Origin: Tubulanus polymorphus
Taxonomy: Eukaryota > Animalia > Nemertea
NCBI RefSeq assembly: GCF_964204645.1
Contig: NC_134035.1
Coordinates: 1,364,001-1,428,000 of the forward strand
DNA length: 64,000 nt
Direction of reading: 5' to 3'
The notes under the pieces are model-generated. The model did no database searches. It was not told the origin of the DNA and worked only from the letters and a program-made list of their open reading frames with translations. Positions 7,727 through 29,701 of this stretch are shown piece by piece (position 1 is the stretch's first letter; the number at the start of each line of letters is the position of its first letter). Position numbers and translations under genes: made by a program.

Positions 7727-8926
7727 ATGAAAACTGTCGGTGGTAATTTGAAGATCCTGACCCTGAATTGTTGGGGTTTATTTGTGCCGTTTGTTTGTCA
7801 AAAACGACGGGAACGTATGACGGCGATAGCGGCTCGCCTGTCCGAGGGCGAACACGATATCGTCATGTTGCAGGAAGTCTGGTCTCAGTCCGATTACGAG
7901 ATGTTATGTAAGCGAATAACACCGGCGTACGCGTATACGCATTACTTCCACAGTAACTTCATCGGCTCGGGAACGTGCGTGTTTTCCAAATACCCGATCT
8001 ACGAGACGTTTTATCACCGTTACCCGGTGAACGGTCACGCGCATCGGATCCAGCACGGCGACTGGTACGGCGGGAAGGGCGTCGGATTGTGCAAGATCGT
8101 CTACAATGGCGTGCGAATAAACCTGTACGTAACGCACCTTCATGCGGAGTATTCGACGAGTAACGATGAGTACCTGGCGCACCGCGTCGTGCAGGCGTTC
8201 GATATGAGTCAGTTCGTTAAAACGACGAGCGAGACGTGCGACGTCGTCATCGCCGGCGGTGATTTCAACAGTCGCCCGACCGACTGCGGATACTCGCTGC
8301 TCGTTACTAACGCCTCGTTAAAAGACGCGTGGTTGAATCAACGCGAGACGCCCTCTGGTGGCGGCGAGACGTCGGACACGCCCTCGAACCCGTTCACCTG
8401 CAAGAAACATCTGATGGATTTCCCGCTCGGTGAACGCCTCGATTACTTGATGTACCGCGCGAACGCGAGTTTCAGCGTGGACTGCGCGCGTTGCTATCTG
8501 ACGATGGGTCGCGTACCGCGCGAACAGTTCTCCTACTCCGATCACGAGGGGGTCGCCGCCGAGTTGGAGATCAAACGGAACATCACGGCGATGGGCGCCG
8601 AAATCGACTTCGAAAAGCGTAAAGAACATTTGAATCGAGCGTTGAGAATCGTGCAAAGCGGATTCGTTCAGTGTAAAAACGAACGGCTGTATTTCGCGGT
8701 TTATTTCGTAGTGGCGTGCGCCGTGTTGGCGATGCTCGGTTTTACGAGCGCTCCATATGGTCTAGCGATCGTTTGCGGCGTCTTGCGGGTATATTTCACG
8801 TTGTTGATGGCGTACGCCGCGTGGGTCGTGCTCATTATTAAACCGGCCGAAGAGAACGCCTTGTGGAATGCCAAAAAAGACATGTCGAATCTGATCGCGC
8901 AGGAAAAACTTTTATCGCAATTCTGA
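7727..8926 (+). CDS. SMPD2: Neutral sphingomyelinase (SMPD2/nSMase1, Isc1 family), single coding exon, 399 aa
   Basis: EEP-fold motifs TLNCWG, LQEVW, P-loop-like GDWYGGKGVG, THLHAEY, GDFN, RLDY, SDH; two C-terminal hydrophobic helices. Confidence 0.95.
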   Translation: MKTVGGNLKILTLNCWGLFVPFVCQKRRERMTAIAARLSEGEHDIVMLQEVWSQSDYEMLCKRITPAYAYTHYFHSNFIGSGTCVFSKYPIYETFYHRYPVNGHAHRIQHGDWYGGKGVGLCKIVYNGVRINLYVTHLHAEYSTSNDEYLAHRVVQAFDMSQFVKTTSETCDVVIAGGDFNSRPTDCGYSLLVTNASLKDAWLNQRETPSGGGETSDTPSNPFTCKKHLMDFPLGERLDYLMYRANASFSVDCARCYLTMGRVPREQFSYSDHEGVAAELEIKRNITAMGAEIDFEKRKEHLNRALRIVQSGFVQCKNERLYFAVYFVVACAVLAMLGFTSAPYGLAIVCGVLRVYFTLLMAYAAWVVLIIKPAEENALWNAKKDMSNLIAQEKLLSQF

Positions 8927-10069: not shown

Positions 10070-17799
<7,730 letters not shown>

Positions 17800-17984
17800 T
17801 CAACCTCTCTCCCTCGCCACTCTCTCCCCTCTCTACACGAAGCAATCTTCTTGGAGAGCGTTTTGTAGATAAATGTGTAATGTTTTATTTGAGGAGGTAG
17901 TAGATTATGATGATCATGATTCTGTCTGATATTTTGTATGTGTAAATATTATATTTTGTACATAAATGAAAAATATTGAAAGTG

Positions 17985-17990
17985 AATAAA
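17985..17990 (+). terminator. Likely CPSF3 polyadenylation signal
   Basis: AATAAA 185 nt after the stop, followed by a U/GU-rich tract. Confidence 0.6.
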
Positions 17991-19300
17991 AAGATCTTCA
18001 CTGCATTTACATTTATGGGTTTTGCGTTGATTAGATTTTGCGTTACTGGCTACGGTTCTGCTGTTATCTTTGGAACAAGGAATTATCCGATACTAAATAC
18101 ATAAAATATCTTGGTGAAGATCTTTATATTCGCGTAATTTAGATATTTAAATGACGCTGACAATGTCGACGGTGGATGCGGTTGCTGCGGCAACGTTAAG
18201 ATGGTAACGATGATGATGATTATTTAACCGAGGAGGAAGAACATGAATTTATTAAAGCGCTTTTTCTAATGATTTTAATGAGGTTTAATATTGAATTTAG
18301 ACAACCGAGTTTCTTAGGTCATTATTTCTCCCTGCCCTAGTAGAGTTTATATACAAATTTCCGAAAGGGTTTATTTATGAGGATTTGGTGGATGTTAGGC
18401 TCCCCCTTCCTTCTCCATTCAGATTAGATATTTTTGAAATTTACATTTTTCTTATTGACACTTACGTTTTGTAAAATTTGGTGACTCTTTATTTCACGTA
18501 TGTTTAGATATTTCAGTCACGGATTTATTTGGAATCTCAACCTGAATTGAGACAATGAATTCTGAGATATTGGTTTCCCCAATGACTCAAATAGACCGCT
18601 TTCCCCGTGCATGATGTGAGTTAGTATCTCGGGGTGCATGAACTGTCCTTACGTAGTTGTGACTAATAAACTAATTTCATTAGTAAATGTTTACGCGGTT
18701 TCCATGATATGAAGACCTGTGTTGGTATGAATCTTTAACTGAAGTGCTATCGGTCGGTATAATTTATAAATTATTCTAGAATTTAAGAAAAAAAAACAGG
18801 CGGTGGCTGATAAATTCGGAAGTAGCTGTTGGGAATCAAGTAATTTATTTCATGGCCTTATTAAAGTTCCTCCACTATATTGTTCAGCTGACTACTGGCG
18901 TGTATTCAACCTGGCGGCGGTGGAACCTTTCATAATGTAAACCCATTCAACCATAGAGATACACAATTGCGGGCTTTTCAGAGCTGTTGATATCATTCTG
19001 ACACGCGCTATTGAATACGTTACTGGCTGACCACGGTGTACACAAGCATAGACCATTCACCTCTGCACACTCACACTGTGAACATGCTACCGTGGATTCT
19101 CCTCCTGGCGATCTTCGCTGCGCTCCCGCTCCTGCTCCTGTTCCTGCTTCCTGAGGAACGACGTCTTTATGTTTTATGTGTTACTGTTCGTCTCTGTACT
19201 GTCCTGTACTGTTCCGTGTTAATTAATCCGTTCTATTTTTCAGCCATTAACCCGTTTTATTTTTCAGGGCCGATTTCTCTGTCGAATTTCGACGTTTGCT

Positions 19301-20076
19301 GGAACAAAACTAATGTCCGAAAGCGTCAGCTCTCCTTCGCCGGTCACGTGTCGAGGATGTCAGACAAAGAGTCGGTCAGGAAATTCTGCCCTCTACACGC
19401 CCTCATACGGAACACGAAAACCAGGATGACGAGGCCTCACTGCCCCCACCTATCTACAAAGTGTGCTGAGTGATGTCATTGACGGGCATATCTGTGGGAT
19501 TGCGCGGGATACAAATGGAGCGGTTATACTGGATTGTCACGCTACTAGCATTCATTGTGTCCTTGTGACCACCCGGATGAGGGATGATTCTACTGTCACG
19601 CTCTTTGTTTCTGGTATTCTGAGTCGGCTGAGGGATGATTCTACTGTCACGCTCTTTGATTTCTAGTTTGAGTGCTAGTTTTCATTGTGTCCTTGTGATA
19701 ACCTCGGTCAGTGGATGAAGTCTCTCGTCGGCTTGTGAGTGCTAGTTTCATTGTGTCCTTGTGACAACCTCGGTCAGTGGATGAAGTCTCTTGTCACGCT
19801 TTTGGGTGCTAGTTGAGATCCTGAATCTCAACCCGGTCAAGCTGGTTGTACTGCGCTATTTGTGTTTCGTGCAATTTTACAGGTGTGTCAGTTACTGACG
19901 TCGCCCAGTACATCCTGCAGTTAGATGGGGAATGTGAGGCGTCGTCATCCTGGTTTTCGCGTTCTGTGTGAGGGCGTGTAGAGGGCAGTATATTCCTGGC
20001 TGGCTCATTGTCTGGTGTTCTGGGCATGTGACCGGCAATGGAGAGCTGTAAAGCTTTCGAACATTAGTTTTGTTCC
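19301..20076 (+). ncRNA. Candidate long hairpin RNA built from inverted RTE-like LINE 3' fragments
   Basis: Arms ~19301-19538 and ~19835-20076 are reverse complements; arm translates as VRKRQLSFAGHVSRM..LYTPSYGTRKPG (RTE-type ORF C-terminus); differences mostly G-U compatible on + strand. Confidence 0.55.
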
Positions 20077-20285
20077 GTACCAGGTTTTCATCGCTCTTCT
20101 CTTTTTTTTCATTTCAGGACTCCCAAGATGAAGAAGAAGATGCTGAAGGCGACTACAGAAGATGGCGAAAAAAGAACACTGAACTCAGCAATATTGAAAG
20201 TTAAGTTGATACACATGTAAATTACGATGTATGATACAGAAAGGATTGTGTAACTACATAATATCGTTCTTTTACTCATTTCCGG

Positions 20286-20510
20286 TTAATCCAGAAAGGC
20301 CCATTTAAAATCTGCCCACCAGAAGTGCCCACAAAAGACTCCACGTTGAATGAACCAAACACCGAAAGTCCTGCCGCAACCGAACCTGGCAGTCTCATCC
20401 TGCATGGCAAAAGGAATGCATACATACATAAAGCTAAGTTGATTTTTCATATCTGGGGTAGAATGCATAGGCACTGGTGAGGAGAGACACGCTGGTCGAG
20501 CTCACCATCT
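20286..20510 (-). mobile_element. Decayed CR1/L2-like LINE ORF2 C-terminal fragment
   Basis: QDETARFGCG...FKWAFLD loosely resembles the Q..AARF..G...LKW.SL pattern of CR1/L2 ORF2; by-eye match only. Confidence 0.35.
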
Positions 20511-20534
20511 CCGCACTACTTTATTGAAGCTCTA

Positions 20535-23150
20535 TGGCCGGTATATTGTTAAAAGTAAATTGAAATATAGCTAGGGCAATGATTGCTTGAATATTTACAA
20601 GGCGAAATGATTGAGTGAGGTCCCTTGAATATTCTTTGGTCTGATAATTAAAATGTAGATTGGTCAGTTATTGATTAAAAGATTTTTTAAGTATGTACAA
20701 TTAAGGTAAATTCAATATCTTATGAAATTTTCTGAATCTACCGTAGATATTTCAGGCCTCATATGACTATTGTTTAACTGACAATCAAGATATAGATAGG
20801 ACAATTTACTAATTAACCAATCGCTTAGATATTAGCAATTATTCAATATCTTATAATGTTTGATGAGAAATTCTTCAGGTGTAGATATTTTAGGGCCCCG
20901 TATACATTTAGGCTGGCTTTACTTGTAAAGATCTAAATCAATCAAATTCATCGTCAGTTAATAGTTTTTTTTACAAATAGTTTATTGATACATTTATAAA
21001 CATTCAGGCACTTTACAGTATATATTATGTGCTGCTTTACCCATTGCATTAATGAATTTCTGGGGGAAAGATGTATAAAATAGTGTCTAGGGCTCTATCG
21101 AGATCTGGTGTAATATATATATGGGGAAATCTATGGACTGCGGGTTTTTCAGAAACCTTGATTAGGTCTCACCACTTTGATAAATCTAGAATAAAACAAA
21201 GCTTTAATTGGTTCAAAACATTCCACAGAGCCATACTTTTGCCTTGTTTTGCGCTATGATTATTATTTAACTGAAAATTATCATGTATATATAGCTAGGA
21301 CAAGTTGCTCATTAACCAATGGCTTAGATATCCACAATTAAGTTGAATTTAGTATTTCATGTAAGATCAAAAACTATTAATATGTAATACAGGTCCATAA
21401 TATAAATGTTGTTAAACTGAAAATTTAAATATAGCTGATATATGTATGAGCACATCTGAATCAGTCTCATCGACTGATCAGTATTTACATCTCCAACTGC
21501 CGTGCTTACGGCCACTGGTCTTGGTCTTCAATATTGCCAAAATTTACCAAAACTTTACTGATTCATCAAAAAGCCATACTGTGTGCCAAGTTACGCATAA
21601 TAGATATTGTTTAACTGACAATTAGAATCAAAGGTGAATAACACATTAATGTATTACTATAAGATATATATGATTAAGGTAAATTCAATATGTTATTTGA
21701 AATTGTTTTTAATTCAGGTCCATGTACATTTAAAATGTAGCTGATACATGTGTATCTGAGCACATTTATTTATCTGTATCTAAGTATTGTGTCTTCATAC
21801 AGCTGTATTAGTTTTGATACATATTGCCAAAATCATTTCACGCAGATTTACTTGCGATCGAAGGGAGATGAAACAAATCTGTACGTGCACAAATACATTC
21901 CTGAATTTGGAAGGGAGAATATTTCAATTTCGCTGTGTATGTCGGATTGAAAGCCTTATTCTGACAGGATATCCTAAACTTAGGTCTTATTCCTCTTGCT
22001 AATAGCTCTCTTTTATTAACCCCTCTCCTTCAAACTATTTTCTAGCATCATGTCTTGCACCGCACCAGGGAGGTCCGGTCATAACAAGGTCTTTCGGTCC
22101 TTATACACAGTGTGCTACTATAAAAGGGAAATAAAGATTATATAGCAATTCGGCTTTAAGGGAATTTCTAATTAACCACTTAAATGTGCTTTTATCTTAA
22201 TTTCTGATGAATTCATAATAGTGATGAATTCCCCACATCTGAAATCCAACTCATGAAGATTTTCAGGCTCCGTGTTCAACTGACTATTAAAATGTAGCTA
22301 GTATGATTACTAATTAACGGATCGCTTAGATATCTAAAAGATTAATTAGAATTAATTCAATGTAATGAATATAAGTGAAAAGTATTTAAAAAATAGTGCA
22401 GTGGATGAGACGACTGTATCGTGCAATGTCACCTGCGTCATGACTGGGCGACATGTGTGTGGGATCTGTTGAATCAGGTTTTGGGGAATACTGTATTCGT
22501 CAAACTATATATCAAAAGCTCTGATGCAAAATCAGCATTTCGAAATAGTGATCAATCGAAATCAGATCTGAAATTCTTGTCGTGTAGAAATATCAAGCCC
22601 CGTATAAAACATTGTCAGAGACAATTTTAATTATAGCTAGGAAATTAATTGAGTGATTAGGTATCTAAGATGAAGATTAATTCAGCATCTTCATATAAGG
22701 TAAAAGTGCTCAAATCTAAACCGTAGGGGTTGATAAGAAAACTGTAAGTATAAGAAGCTGTAAATATGCAGCTGTAAACTGTAAATATAAGAAGCAATAT
22801 TTAGAATTACTGGAATGGATTAGAATAACATTCACTGGGCACAGATGTCACCACCTATGGGTAGAAAACATATCTCTTCAAGTTTATTAACTGAAGTTAG
22901 TTTGATAATACGAACATGGTTTAGCTGACAATCGAAATGTATATAGGGAAACAGTACAAAAACAATTTGATAAGATTGATTATGCATTACTAAATTTGTT
23001 GTAACTCTGGTATTCCTAGAGATGACTATAGATGCTTTAGTCGAATTTTTTTTAAACTATAATAATCAACCGTTGCATAGATATCTAGAATATAGATGAA
23101 TTACGATATGAGTTGAATTTCATACAGATATTGTTTAATAATTGACTATT
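20535..23150 (+). repeat. Highly diverged interspersed/tandem ~130-150 bp repeat, forward copies
   Basis: Recurring GTAGATATTTCAGGC..TATTGTTTAACTGACAAT..ATAGCTAGGACAA..TTAACCAATCGCTTAGATAT at ~20540, 20743, 21260, 21390, 21600, 22257, 22583, 22915, 23125. Confidence 0.65.
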
Positions 23151-23184
23151 ATCAAAATCTACTTACCGGTCCACATCGCTGATC

Positions 23185-23187
<3 letters not shown>

Positions 23188-23279
<92 letters not shown>
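23188..23279. repeat. (TA)n microsatellite
   Basis: ~45 perfect TA units. Confidence 0.98.
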
Positions 23280-23282
<3 letters not shown>

Positions 23283-23819
23283 TTGACACGTTAATTATGA
23301 TCAGTGATATTCGAAAGGATTTTCTGCTCACAAGATTCTGCTCTTTTTTTCAGCTATACTACTAATCGACTAGTCATAAAATGTACAAAATGATCTTCAA
23401 CCTTGTAATATAGATATTCCAAATCTCGATGTATTAAAATAGGCAGTCAACTTAATTGACCCCAATCAGTCACTTGCCGGTTCAGACTGGTTGGAAGATT
23501 AATTGAATGAACCAGAACCGAATTTCCCAATTATCTGCTCGGATTTAAAGAAAAAGAAAGTTATGTGAAATCGACCGCCGATCACACAACTATATCTGTA
23601 CTTCGATTTCCGATTTTGAAAAAACTTAAAACTACAAAAAAAATTTAAAATTAGACAAAATTACGACCTTGTAAACTTTCGGACTATTTACATGAAAAAA
23701 AAGACCAAAGAAATCTAGAAATTAGACTAAGTGATCTTAAACCTTGTAAACTTTCGGACTATTTACACGAAAAAAAGAGCAAAGAAATGTAAAATTAGAC
23801 AACCAAATTAGGAGACCTC

Positions 23820-24745
23820 ACCGATAATGAACCCGGCAATCACAAAAGGTAACTTAATATATTTGGAATTATTGCAATAAATTCTGAATGAACTTGATAT
23901 TCATGGAATTATTACGATTAATTCTTATTGAAATATTTTGTCATTAAAGGATATCTTCTTTTGATCATTGCAGCTAAATTTAAACTATGCGAAAAAACCA
24001 AGTTTGAGAATAACTACTCGCCCAAAATCGACCAACTTGAACGGTGCACAGCCAACTAGGATCGAACTCATTAACCAATCAACTAATAAGATAATCGCCG
24101 ATAATGAAACCAGCAATCATAAAAGGTAACTTGATATACATGGAATTATTACGATTAATTCTTATTGAAATATTTTGTTATTAAAGGATATCTTCTTTTG
24201 ATCATTGCAGCTAAATTTCAACTATGAGAAAAAACCCAGCTTGAGAACAACTACTCGCCCAAAATCGACCAACTTGAACAGCGCACAGATGGAGCCAACA
24301 GAATCGAACTCATTAACGCACAAACTTTAGATGATCCACGCCGATAACGAACCAAGCAATGATAAAAGGTAACTTGATATACATGGAATTATTACGATTA
24401 ATTCTTATTGAAATATTTTGTTATTAAAGGATATCTTCTTTTGATCATTGCAGCTAAATTTCAACTATGAGAAAAAACCCAGCTTGAGAACAACTACTCG
24501 CCCAAAATCGACCAACTTGAACAGCGCACAGATGGAGCCAACAGAATCGAACTCATTAACGCACAAACTTTAGATGATCCACGCCGATAACGAACCAAGC
24601 AATGATAAAAGGTAACTTGATATACATCAAATTATTACGATTAATTCTTATTGAAATATTTTGTCATTACGGAATATCTTCTTTTAATCATTGCAGCTAA
24701 ATTTCAACTATGAGAAAAAACCCAGCTTGAGATCAACTACTCATC
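23820..24745 (+). repeat. 243-bp tandem repeat, each unit an apparent intron (85 nt) plus exon (158 nt)
   Basis: Donors AAG|GTAACT at 23849, 24126, 24369, 24612; acceptors TTGCAG ending 23973, 24210, 24453, 24696. Confidence 0.85.
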
Positions 24746-26519
24746 AGAAATGAATACTGATTGACCCATTTGCTGATGAAAACTGCAGAAGCCCAGATGA
24801 GAAGTTGATGAGCCAGCAACGGATTAATCACTCAACGATGGATTCTTCTACAATGGTAGTTGATCTCTATGAAATATTTTATCAGGAGCAGCAGAGACTA
24901 AAGTGAATCTTATAAACACTTATTCGAGCGACAAAGCTAATGGATTATCTCATAAACACTGATTCAGGATAAGCACTGTTTTAAAGGCAGCAAAGACAAT
25001 AGCGGATTTCTGTAGTAAAGTATTGATTTTTTTACTTATCACCCTTTTTCAAACCAGTCTGATATAGTGTTTTAAAGGAAAATATTTTATAATGTTTAAT
25101 GCAATGTGAGAGTCTAATAAAAGCTCCATTAATTCACGATATTGGTATTCGATCCTTGGTCGATAGAGAAGTCAAGTTAGGTTAGTCACTAGGGGTAAAT
25201 GGTTGCGTCGAGCGCCTAGTTTGGGCTCGCAGGTCTGTTGAGTTAACTCCTAAACTGAGATATAGTTTCAACATGATATTGTGAGTTTAATCTTTAAACT
25301 TTACCATAGTTAAACATAGTCAACTATGGCTATTTGTCCGTGTAGGTATCACATAGTTAGGAAACATAGAACATAACGTTAGGCCAGTGTTGATGTACAA
25401 ATATTAAGTATTTGCTGAATTGTAGGTGTATCAATTTGATGGATATATATTTTCGAAGGCCCGTGTAACTGATTTCACAATTGAATCGTATATGTCGATT
25501 TTCACATCGAGTTTTAACTTTGAGCCTCCATCAATCTGTTTGATGATCATAGCTACGTATTTGAAATCAAAAGCTTTATTTGAAAGGAGACCATTATTTA
25601 CATTTGAGAGGTAAAGCTAGGAATAACAAGGCATAAAGTTATAGCTAGGACTAATTTTGAGCGTTTTAACATTGTTTATAGCTGTTTGAACTTCTATTAT
25701 TGTAATGGGTGAATCCATCACAAGATGGCTCGCGTGAATTATCACTTAGCTTCAAATCGGGTGTATAATGATTATTAAGGAGTGGCAGTGAATCGGTAGT
25801 GCTTTTCTAAAATGGGCCCAGAAACTTTACAGTGAAAAAATGCCTGCAGTTGTAAATAGAGAAGTATAAATAATACATAATACAAACGACAAGTACATAA
25901 ATTAATATGAAAATAAATTTAAAAAAAACCAATAAATAATAAGTAGTAAATAATACAAAATACAAGTACATAGATAAATAGATAATATTAAAAAACATAT
26001 AAAAATAATAAACAACAATAGAAACAAACAACAAATTAATATTCTATTTACATGAAAAGGCATTTTTTCAAATATTTATCAACAAGGTTATTCATTTATC
26101 GAAAAACCTTCCCTAAGTATAGATCTTTTCACCCTAGATCTTTTCTGTTGTTATTCAAAGCATTCTATCGGACTCAGTTATTGTAATGAACAAAACAAAT
26201 GACCATAAACCTTAACTAAAGCGAACACACTTAAAAAAATAACTTATATGATAGAATGCTTTGAATAACTGTGATGAAAGATCGACCGTCCTATGAACTA
26301 GCCGCGCTCAATCACTGCTGTGACCGTTGATTGTTATACGGGGGTAGACTTACTATCTAAAATCTGGTACATACATTTTACTTTTTAGAAAGAAAGTAAA
26401 ACAGCTATAAACTTAAGTTATTGATTAGTTACCGATTGTATGATTATGTTGTTGTTTTCGAAGCTGCCAGAAAAAACATCAGAATACTTAGTATTTAATG
26501 CCAAGGTGCTTGGACATCT

Positions 26520-29410
26520 TTAAGTCAGGGCAAAGTTGGCAAAATTCTAGTTTTTTAGTGAAAGTAATGATTAGATGATACTTAGATTCCAGAGTGAATC
26601 TGTATGTTCCATCTCTAGTTTTCTCTATGTCGGAGACTGTTATTGTAACACATAACGCATGTTTGGTAATTAGGAACTTGCATGATGATTCCTCGTTTAA
26701 GATATTATTGTCGTGTGAATAAAACGATGTACATTTCCGTCATTCATGTTGAAACTTTTAAGTTGTTAATTTCTAAAGCAACAATTCCACTGTGGTGCTT
26801 TTCAGTGGTTCATAAAATACTGATTTAATTAGCAGGAGCATAGAATAGAAGGAGTTCAGTTACTTGATAGGCCAACTCGAGGATACAGTGCTAATTGGTC
26901 AATTGTCCTAGCTTTGTTTTGATTATCAGGTTAACCGCATCTGTGTGGGGCCTGTAATATCTGGACAAGAAGAATTTCTGATCTTTATATAAGAGTTGTA
27001 TTTATATCTACTATCAAGTTGAATAATACAAATTAAGAAGTTGCCGTAGCTTCGTCAGTCAAACCATATTTATATGAAAATACTCGATTAATCTTAAATC
27101 ATCTCGAAGAAAAACCTTTATAATAGTTTGCAGGGTTTGATCTAAGGAATAAATGCCACTTGACCTTGGGGCAAGCATATGTATTATCACTTGCCCCCCC
27201 ACAGAAATCAACTTGCCCTACATGAGCAGTCCGATTGAGACACAATCATCCCTTGCATCGAGTGGGATAAAAGCTTTGAGATATATAGAATTACACAAGC
27301 TCGGTGGACGAGTGATTGTGATAACCTACATGCCCTAATGAAAATATACTTGTCCCGGGCAATTGGACTAGTGCTTAAATCAGACCCTGCTTTGTTTCAA
27401 ATGTAACATTTGTGAAATAAGCTATAGTTGATAATTAAAGAAATCTCTCAGACAAGGAAAATTTTGTCACTGTTTTTAGTTTTTTTGTAATAACTAAGAT
27501 TAATTAGTTTACGTTACGCTTTCCAGAGTGAGTGAATTTTTAGGTTTTGTGTTGAACTGTTTTTTGATAACTCATTTAGCGGGGTATAATTGTTGTGTAA
27601 GAATAAAATGATATACATGTTTCGTCATTCATACTGTGGTGCTCATCAATGGTTCATAAAATACTATTTTGAATAAGGCCCTTATGGAAAATAGAGTAGC
27701 AAAATAGAGTAGTAGTCTCTTGATAAATGAGGATGAACAGTATTAATCAGTAGATTATGCTAGCTATGGACTCTAAAACCATGGTTTAACAATATCTTTA
27801 TGGGTTCTGAAATATCTGCACAAGAAGCACCTCAAAAAGTTAGTTATTGAATCTTAACTTAATTGTAGCAAAGCCATAAGTTATTAGTAATTGCCCTAGC
27901 TCTATTCAAATTGACAGTTGAACAATATTTATGTACTCGATTTATATACTCTTGAGACTTTTTTTGAAATACAGGTCACGTTTTTGTAAATGACTGAGGC
28001 ACTTCCTCCAGTACATGAATACCTGTCATTTAGGTATAATTGTTGTTGTGGAGATAAAACGACATGTTCATGTCAATTGTTCATAAAACATTGATTTATT
28101 AAGGTCCTATCTATGTCTATATGGGTTCTGAAATATCTGCACAAGAAGCACCTCAAAAAGTTAGTTATTGAATCTTAACTTAATTGTAGCAAAGCCATAA
28201 GTTATTAGTAATTGCCCTAGCTCTATTCAAATTGACAGTTGAACAATATTTATATACTCGATTTATATACTCTTGTTGAATGCATAGAAGATTATACCTC
28301 ATAAATACTTTGCATTAAATGTAACATTTGAGAAAATAACCAATTTGATAATGTCTTGAAACCTCTTAAAGACAAGGCAAAGGTGGCAAAACCACCGGGT
28401 CATTATCTTGTAATATAATGTTAATGAAAATTAAATCAAAGACTTTATTTAATCTAATCTTAAGCTTTCCAGATTGAATTTGTGGTTTTATCTCCGGTTA
28501 TAATGTTTTTATGTTGGAGACTTTTTTTGAAATACAGGTCACGTTTTTGTAAATGACTGAGGCACTTCCTCCAGTACATGAATACCTGTCATTTAGGTAT
28601 AATTGTTGTTGTGGAGATAAAACGACATGTTCATGTCAATTGTTCATAAAACATTGATTTATTAAGGTCCTATCGAATAAAGTTGAGCTTTTTCTTGATA
28701 AATGAGATGTCCTCTATCGATGTCATTTGAAAAGTTAACATGATAGATTCATATTTCATGAAATATAACAAAGTGTCGGTTATATTGACCTCATGAATTG
28801 TCAAATTCATAATCTTAGACTTTTAGACTAGTCCAATTTTCGTTTTTTTATGGATCAAAGTTTATAATTCTGTGTGTATTTTTGTTATTTTCCTATTGAT
28901 GCAAATTGTATAAATCAGCTGTAGTGGAAATGTATCGTAGATAATGACTTCTAAATACCTTACATGTAACTTTGTTTTAAATTAGTCAATTTCATACATA
29001 GTAATAGAAATATAATTACTATTAGAATTTGAGAAAATAAGCTAAAAGTTAATAATATTATATGTGAAAATAAAATGATGTAAGAGTGTAAATCAGATTG
29101 ATTACTTAATCCTACGCTTTCCAGAGTATTTGGCCAGGTTTATCTCTGGTTTTAGTGCGGGGAGCCATGGACTCGCGGTTTAAGAGTCCATGGTTGTGGG
29201 CCATAGACGTTTCTGTTTTGGAGTCTATGTTTGTACCATGCGCATTTAAACACTCGTTTATAGTTTATACGCACATGGTGAATTGACTAGTTGTTTTTGA
29301 AAGTCCGTGTTTGAGGAGCTTACGTTATAATTCCTCGAGCACAAACCTGGCATTTTGTATAATTGTTGTATGAGAATAAATATGATTGATTTTGGAATTT
29401 GTCATTCGTT
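26520..29410. repeat. Diverged ~0.7-0.9 kb tandem duplications carrying inverted copies of the 20.5-23.1 kb repeat
   Basis: Shared blocks (TTCCAGAGTGA, ATAATTGTTGT..GAATAAAA, GGTTCATAAAATACT) at ~26520, 27450, 28370, 29030; near-exact recent duplications 27800-27955=28121-28276 and 27954-28110=28517-28673. Confidence 0.7.
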
Positions 29411-29701
29411 GGGTTTAGCAACAAGTGTTACTAAAACGAAGCACTACTAAAAACGAAGACTATATGCACCCGAGAAAACCGACCAATTTATAACGTTTCC
29501 GGCAGAGGTGGTACACAGAGCGCCCCAAGTGATGATTTCGAGTATCTTCGGACTTCTTTTTAGTCATGCATAGTTCTAATACCCCAAAGTGCAGGCCTTC
29601 GTTTAGTAGCGCATAGTTTTTAGTAACACCCCCATTTCACTGCCCTGCTATAGAATAACTGCTTTTCACGGCCGGCCCGTGAATCATTTTCACGAACCCA
29701 G

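Follow-up and report, generated by a model that had tools for sequence, protein, structure and literature searches.

We consider it likely that the region at positions 19301-20076 of the window (the whole stretch of 64,000 nucleotides analysed here, positions 1,364,001 to 1,428,000 of contig NC_134035.1 of the nemertean Tubulanus polymorphus) is one copy of a module that belongs to a multicopy gene-like repeat, and that its + strand encodes a selected RNA hairpin which would act as double-stranded RNA. Selection has maintained the pairing of this hairpin in the lineages behind the present copies, through changes that preserve G-U pairs and through compensatory changes. The module is probably a real, functional multicopy RNA hairpin.

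The fold-back and its copies

A repeat search of the window confirmed a 776-base fold-back made of three collinear inverted-repeat blocks (Table 1). The inverted arms of about 240 nt described in the initial annotation were recovered by this search and by a global alignment of 19301-19530 against the reverse complement of 19845-20076, and the left arm contains the 25-mers quoted there and the peptide strings RKRQLSFAGHVSRM (frame 2) and LYTPSYGTRKPG (frame 0). The alignment contains 177 matches, 13 transversions and 4 gap columns. Among the transitions, 30 differences are of the type that leaves a G-U pair on the + strand (17 G/A and 13 T/C) and 9 are of the type that leaves an A-C mismatch (5 A/G and 4 C/T), so that the earlier hand count of 28-30 versus about 9 was accurate. 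The ratio departs from 1 (binomial p=0.0011), each transition class is skewed separately (17:5 and 13:4), and both arms contribute to the bias.

Both strands of the fold-back were then folded as RNA. The + strand reached -443.4 kcal/mol (z=-24.5) and the - strand -331.0 kcal/mol, a difference of 112 kcal/mol in favor of the + strand. As DNA, the arms are only about 77% identical, with longest identical runs of 20, 18 and 16 bp, and on the + strand the runs paired by Watson-Crick and G-U pairs extend to 34 and 28 bp. The predicted + strand duplex of about 230 bp, with approximately 77% Watson-Crick and 13% G-U pairs, is an extended double-stranded hairpin of the kind found at hpRNA loci, and its length and continuity are those of hpRNAs. 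When positions 17500-29500 were scanned against Rfam, no covariance model matched at E values up to 1.

Table 1 Features of the hairpin and of the repeat that carries it (window positions)
Feature	Position	Strand	Remarks
Host unit, a gene-like mosaic dispersed repeat of ~9.4 kb with the hairpin	18574-27954	+	right end approximate
ETS-like CGGAAGT	18817-18823	+	present in 13/30 copies
Open frame (putative coding sequence), 145 codons	19036-19473	+	ATG at 19075; hydrophobic N-terminus; enters left arm
Conserved core of all subfamilies	19084-20289	+	hairpin plus ~215 nt on each side
24-nt tandem duplication ending in TTTTTCAG	19222-19267	+	Tandem Repeats Finder; just upstream of left arm
Hairpin left arm	19301-19530	+	repeat search, arm alignment, RNA fold
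Inverted-repeat block 1	19301-19324/20053-20076		24 nt, 96% identity
Inverted-repeat block 2	19327-19382/19993-20048		77% identity
Inverted-repeat block 3	19383-19524/19850-19991		76% identity
Loop	19531-19844	+	G+T-rich (0.62); most conserved part of the whole unit
Hairpin right arm, antisense copy of the left arm	19845-20076	+	repeat search, arm alignment, RNA fold
Polypyrimidine tract with candidate CAG acceptor at 20117; exon-like stretch 20118-20200	20095-20200	+	sequence

We searched the window's own assembly (268 Mb, 77 contigs) for further copies. The sequence search returned at least 40 full-length hairpin matches at 98-99% identity; with up to 3 mismatches allowed, the genome contains 86 occurrences of a 31-mer placed at the junction of loop and right arm, and a 27-mer from the loop has 97 exact occurrences. 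Near-identical copies (98-99%) number at least 86-100, and there are more than 60 diverged ones. A protein-level search of the genome with the right arm gave 328 candidates, of which the best 150 were scored; all of these seem to represent arms of this family, an assignment made from the places that could be checked against known copies and from open-frame lengths. An invariant 24-mer was absent from metagenome contigs.

The copies fall into subfamilies. The young copies, with hairpins 98-99% identical, form type A, and type D comprises copies 82-94% identical that have the same loop as type A, the loop being nearly invariant across these two subfamilies. In type B the arms are about 88-90% identical, and the loop is a different tandem array, of 2-5 units each about 60 nt long, which share the CTAGYATTCATTG motif with the type-A loop and vary in number among copies. 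Each type-B loop unit also carries a small perfect hairpin (L057-L069, e.g. L057:1295-2094). The loop in the window is made of two tandem units of about 54 nt followed by 2.2 units of 66 nt, with a common CTAGYWTTCATTG motif, and its + strand folds to -105.3 kcal/mol (z=-2.55) versus z=+0.75 for the - strand.

Of the type-A copies (n=77), 95% are found no more than 4 Mb from a contig end, versus 37% expected under a uniform distribution, and B-like copies are more internal (median relative distance 0.26 versus 0.087 for type A). Isolated fragments of loop and right arm were found at L047 (G000:C4:6077600-6081600; 348 nt at 96%) and L037 (G000:C9:5217100-5223100; 229 nt at 92%); they are without the outer arms and the usual flanks, and are truncated or rearranged copies.

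Maintenance of pairing on the + strand

We analyzed 60 copies to determine how the pairing has evolved. G-U pairs outnumbered A-C mismatches on the + strand in every one of them, and the Watson-Crick fraction stayed between 0.70 and 0.77 despite subfamily divergence of up to 14%. Twenty-three pair columns showed two or more Watson-Crick types, each type being counted if present in at least two copies, versus 7.6 ± 2.2 (maximum 16) in 1000 permutations in which right-arm columns were exchanged among columns with the same majority base. RNAalifold, applied to 24 diverged representatives, predicted 223 pairs with 33 compensated double changes and a covariation term of -12.62 kcal/mol. Watson-Crick switches across subfamilies occur at 19328/20047 (AT/GC), 19352/20023 (CG/AT/GC), 19365/20010, 19427/19947, 19440/19934 and 19503-19506/19868-19871. 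Compensatory changes beyond chance and a strand-specific excess of G-U pairs, which mark conserved structured RNAs in general, are both found here. The initial annotation had proposed a transposable-element fragment domesticated into a strand-specific structured RNA. Its strand-specific structure under selection stands on the 60 copies and their compensatory changes; the single locus does not, as the hairpin exists in at least 86-100 near-identical copies plus the diverged ones, always inside one larger repeat.

The polarity of the changes was obtained by parsimony reconstruction. On internal branches, changes from Watson-Crick to G-U (46) exceeded those from Watson-Crick to A-C (23; p=0.008), and + strand changes comprised 31 C>T versus 16 G>A and 15 A>G versus 7 T>C. 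In addition, 45 G-U pairs were restored to Watson-Crick pairs, about four times the neutral expectation derived from the transition rate at Watson-Crick pairs. The private mutations of young copies gave G-U to A-C ratios of 28:21 and 41:29, a weaker and non-significant excess. Since this private-mutation ratio is statistically no different from the internal-branch ratio, part of the G-U bias could be mutational. The covariation result is independent of the private-mutation ratio.

The best surviving alternative, to which we give a low probability, is that the region is a non-functional DNA inverted repeat whose G-U excess stems from strand-asymmetric mutation, such as C>T and A>G changes left on the non-template strand by transcription. 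The + strand excess of both C>T and A>G is what this explanation predicts, the private mutations lean the same way (41:29), and the loop is G+T-rich as well. Such asymmetry cannot, however, yield the excess of compensatory double changes or the fourfold restoration of Watson-Crick pairs, and it does not fit a hairpin far more conserved than its flanks. The G+T content averages 0.556 in the arms, 0.618 in the loop and 0.45-0.54 in the flanks; the excess is thus confined to the hairpin, and its absence from the flanks of the unit argues against a unit-wide transcription-coupled skew, which we rejected.

Further sources of the pattern were considered and rejected. An ADAR-edited retrocopy is not the full cause, because ADAR gives A>G only and C>T is also in excess: C>T outweighs A>G, and the private spectrum is near symmetric. 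The hairpin thereby withstands the objection, raised in the initial annotation itself, that the bias might come from one ADAR-edited arm or from the insertion of a distinct subfamily, as both arms and both C>T and A>G contribute to it. Gene conversion from arm to arm was likewise rejected as a source of the covariation; it is unlikely since in none of the 60 copies do the arms share an identical tract of more than 31 bp.

The host repeat and the apparent spread of the inner stem and loop

The hairpin is an internal part of a larger repeat, since the flanking sequence on both sides is the same in each of the 55 end-complete copies retrieved and the genome contains no match, with up to 3 mismatches, to the hairpin-junction pattern of an empty site. 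All 40 scored copies show a sharp left edge of this host unit, at 18572-18574, and upstream of 18574 the sequence is unrelated between copies; on the right, matches stop at query position 7878, which corresponds to 27954. Alignments of diverged copies (82-86% identity) cover exactly 19084/19156-20281/20289, the core in which nucleotide diversity is lowest.

We call the host unit gene-like from features read in its sequence. In 54 of 60 copies the frame at 19036-19473 remains open, over 135-237 codons, and indels do not break it; its dN/dS is about 0.78 in the part upstream of the arm; the value within the arm is unreliable owing to frameshift variants. This frame may thus be a coding sequence. 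It had no Pfam match, giving merely sub-threshold transmembrane-like noise, and no homologue at E values up to 0.1 in a word-based search; an exact-sequence look-up in public assembly contigs gave none, and the ESM Atlas returned only noise. The TTTTTCAG duplication is kept in all subfamilies, and looks as if it could be read in two ways, as acceptor-like sites and, within the open frame, as NPFYFS codons. Beyond the hairpin, 41 nt past its base, the motif at 20117 is kept in all subfamilies shown; it is strongly acceptor-like, and a candidate splice acceptor.

The remainder of the unit is mosaic. The 3.3-kb segment from 20283 to about 23549 is absent from 8 of 30 copies, in which 20282 joins sequence like that from 23550 onward; the segment, close to whose end lies a long (AT)n palindromic microsatellite (23185-23294), is optional and is possibly a nested insertion. 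At 23818-24824 there are four tandem units of 243 nt, each with an exon-like stretch ending in AAAAG/GTAAC, which look like repeated micro-exons of a gene-like unit on the + strand. The 3' end of the unit (27787-28674) has an A-B-A'-...-B arrangement, in which a 168-nt repeat occupies 27787-27954 and 28108-28275 (97% identity) and a 158-nt repeat 27954-28111 and 28517-28674 (100%); the first 47 nt of B are found again at many other loci.

The hairpin is markedly more uniform than the sequence around it. Identity among copies is 97-99% in the hairpin versus about 90% in the adjacent flanks, and nucleotide diversity rises from 0.010 in the loop to 0.02-0.03 in the arms and to 0.2-0.3 at 500 bp out. 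Private mutations follow the same order: their density per site is 0.001 for the loop, increases to 0.005 for the arms and reaches 0.02-0.03 in the outer flanks. Such a diversity trough at the hairpin is not what a plain transposition burst with neutral decay would predict. The tree of the right flank mixes type-A and type-B hairpins, and at 24 sites diagnostic for A versus B the type-A copies carry variable blocks of the B state left of about 19440 and are uniformly A from 19442 inward. From this mixed tree and these mosaics, the inner stem and loop seem to have spread over already diverged copies via gene conversion or recombination centered on the loop. Purifying selection on individual copies may add to this homogenization.

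These observations also bear on a reading at the DNA level, in which the element is a fragile site or recombination initiator that spreads in a homing-like manner as breaks are repaired from paralogues, and in which pairing matters in single-stranded DNA. A diversity minimum at the loop center that rises outward on both sides, A/B mosaics with a uniform inner part, a flank tree of mixed types and enrichment near contig ends all agree with it, and the + strand also folds better as single-stranded DNA (-188.8 versus -164.8 kcal/mol with DNA parameters). We nevertheless hold this reading to be improbable, slightly more so than mutational asymmetry. RNA parameters give a far greater asymmetry between the strands than DNA parameters do (112 versus 24 kcal/mol), arms that are 77% identical are poor cruciform formers, a mechanism acting on double-stranded DNA gives no cause for favoring one strand, and the genome search yielded no empty sites with up to 3 mismatches.

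Insertion at this place of a fold-back or MITE-type DNA transposon, its terminal inverted repeats 230 bp long, would explain a 776-bp unit with sharp inverted termini (24 nt at 96%), but it is most improbable, as 55 of 55 end-complete copies have the same flanks, with no target-site duplications and no varied insertion contexts, and the lack of an empty site (up to 3 mismatches) contradicts current mobility; at most, the hairpin would descend from a single ancestral insertion.

Candidate functions and comparison with known systems

The initial annotation had gone further and read the fold-back as one hpRNA gene, a single domesticated fragment whose endo-siRNAs silence its parent family of RTE LINEs. 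In this strict form we find the model hardly tenable. It does account for a long, G-U-rich and + strand-specific hairpin, and the arm peptides bear a possible resemblance to the C-terminus of a LINE ORF2 of the RTE clade. The copy number given above, all of it within one host repeat, contradicts it, and no sequence outside the family emerged as parent or target among the matches scored. The arm peptides had no Pfam match, no homologue and only noise in the Atlas, searches that their broken frames make weak; tblastn with them against the window and 68 loci found no match outside the hairpin family. An RVT_1 search detected at least 150 reverse transcriptase (RT) loci in the genome, and no RT or endonuclease domain lies near the hairpin. 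No LINE with arm-like sequence was present among the best 150 of the 328 protein-level matches, a comparison outside which the RT-bearing loci lay, nor in about 330 kb of DNA; silencing of a parent LINE, and RTE copies matching the arms, thus found no counterpart within that scope. Among the best candidates scored for a target in trans, only family copies match the arms. The ETS-like motif that had been suggested as part of a promoter is kept in just 13 of 30 copies and is not conserved. Finally, nemerteans are reported to possess siAGO and to lack DICER2, and a small-RNA library from the gonad of Notospermus geniculatus had no endo-siRNA signature (PMC11114477), which also speaks against the strict model.

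Returning to a selected RNA hairpin in every member of the family, we asked which role would suit it best. A domain search of the genome found a single Dicer_dimer locus and four or more A_deamin loci; RdRP had no match in the genome, in a search whose control was uninformative. One A_deamin (ADAR/ADAT-type) gene, at G000:C6:22412835-22415754, lies about 4.5 kb from a hairpin copy (C6:22407586-22408358), probably a coincidence in a chromosome-end region.

Our leading guess, which we put forward tentatively, is that the hairpin serves as a precursor of small RNAs acting on the family's own transcripts. As part of the likely reading given at the outset, the module would be read on the + strand, the same as the open frame and the splice-like signals of the unit, and the resulting RNA would form an imperfect duplex of about 230 bp, capped by a structured and conserved tandem-repeat loop, and act as double-stranded RNA within the sense transcript of the unit. 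In the small-RNA model, the single Dicer would cut the duplex, and the small RNAs would be loaded into siAGO. The G-U pairs would reduce the identity of the arms at the DNA level to 77% and leave the RNA paired; in engineered G:U hairpins the DNA inverted repeat is broken and RNAi activity is retained (PMC9263138). With the left arm inside the family's open frame and the right arm antisense to it, such small RNAs would be directed at their own family. That conservation peaks in the loop is a point for which the hpRNA model offers no explanation.

Next, and only a little less plausible to us, comes a cis-acting structure, which might collapse an intron adjoining the candidate acceptor at 20117 or affect the stability or processing of the transcript. 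A more specific hypothesis, which we regard as rather doubtful, would place in each member of this chromosome-end-enriched orphan family a built-in, selected and G:U-buffered hairpin of 230 bp as a self-directed small-RNA or double-stranded RNA 'brake' that works through Dicer-1 and siAGO, in a phylum regarded as having partly lost endogenous RNAi, with loop and inner stem spreading by gene conversion.

The module shares features with several known systems. Like intronic 'zipper' or bridging stems, the hairpin lies between an upstream open frame and an acceptor-like site, at 20117, and its folding would take 776 nt out of the effective spacing, if the splicing suggested by these signals takes place. 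Known bridging stems are short, however, and a covarying 230-bp duplex with a conserved repeat loop exceeds what that role needs. Long inverted arms and sharp ends recall fold-back or MITE transposons, and the arm peptides presumably recall the ORF2 tail seen in 3' fragments of RTE-clade LINEs; unlike either, the hairpin has constant flanks and gives no hint of independent mobility, and no parent LINE was found for it in the matches and DNA searched. The family offers a clear case of repeat copies that are not neutral fossils, as hairpin and loop are held or homogenized while the flanks diverge.

The hpRNA loci of Drosophila, including suppressors of the Nmy/Tmy type in D. simulans, which derive from the families they silence, are a second point of comparison. 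As in those loci, a long inverted-repeat RNA that arose from duplicated sequence is predicted to give a few hundred base pairs of double-stranded RNA and is tied to an amplified, fast-evolving family, with one arm antisense to the family's open frame. Drosophila hpRNAs, in contrast, come from one or a few dedicated loci, whereas the nemertean hairpin is present in every family member, in more than 100 copies, has a strongly conserved loop and occurs in a phylum reported to be without Dicer-2 (PMC11114477). If transcribed and processed, it would be a natural source of double-stranded RNA with more than 100 copies in Nemertea. Given that nemerteans reportedly have siAGO without Dicer-2 or an endo-siRNA signature (PMC11114477), the family provides test loci for a non-canonical route of endogenous RNAi. 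The initial annotation described Drosophila hpRNAs as G-U-rich; the word 'wobble' occurs 0 times in the 2023 Drosophila hpRNA papers PMC10292708 and PMC10317233.

The G-U pairs have their likeness in engineered plant transgenes that express G:U hpRNAs (PMC9263138), where they make up 18-21% of pairs versus about 13% in the nemertean hairpin. In both, wobble pairs keep the RNA hairpin and break the DNA inverted repeat. The plant constructs were designed, and their benefit is to avoid DNA methylation and self-silencing (PMC9263138); the nemertean pattern is natural and arose via C>T and A>G in both arms. The hairpin family thus parallels, in a natural genome, the engineered design of G:U hairpins.
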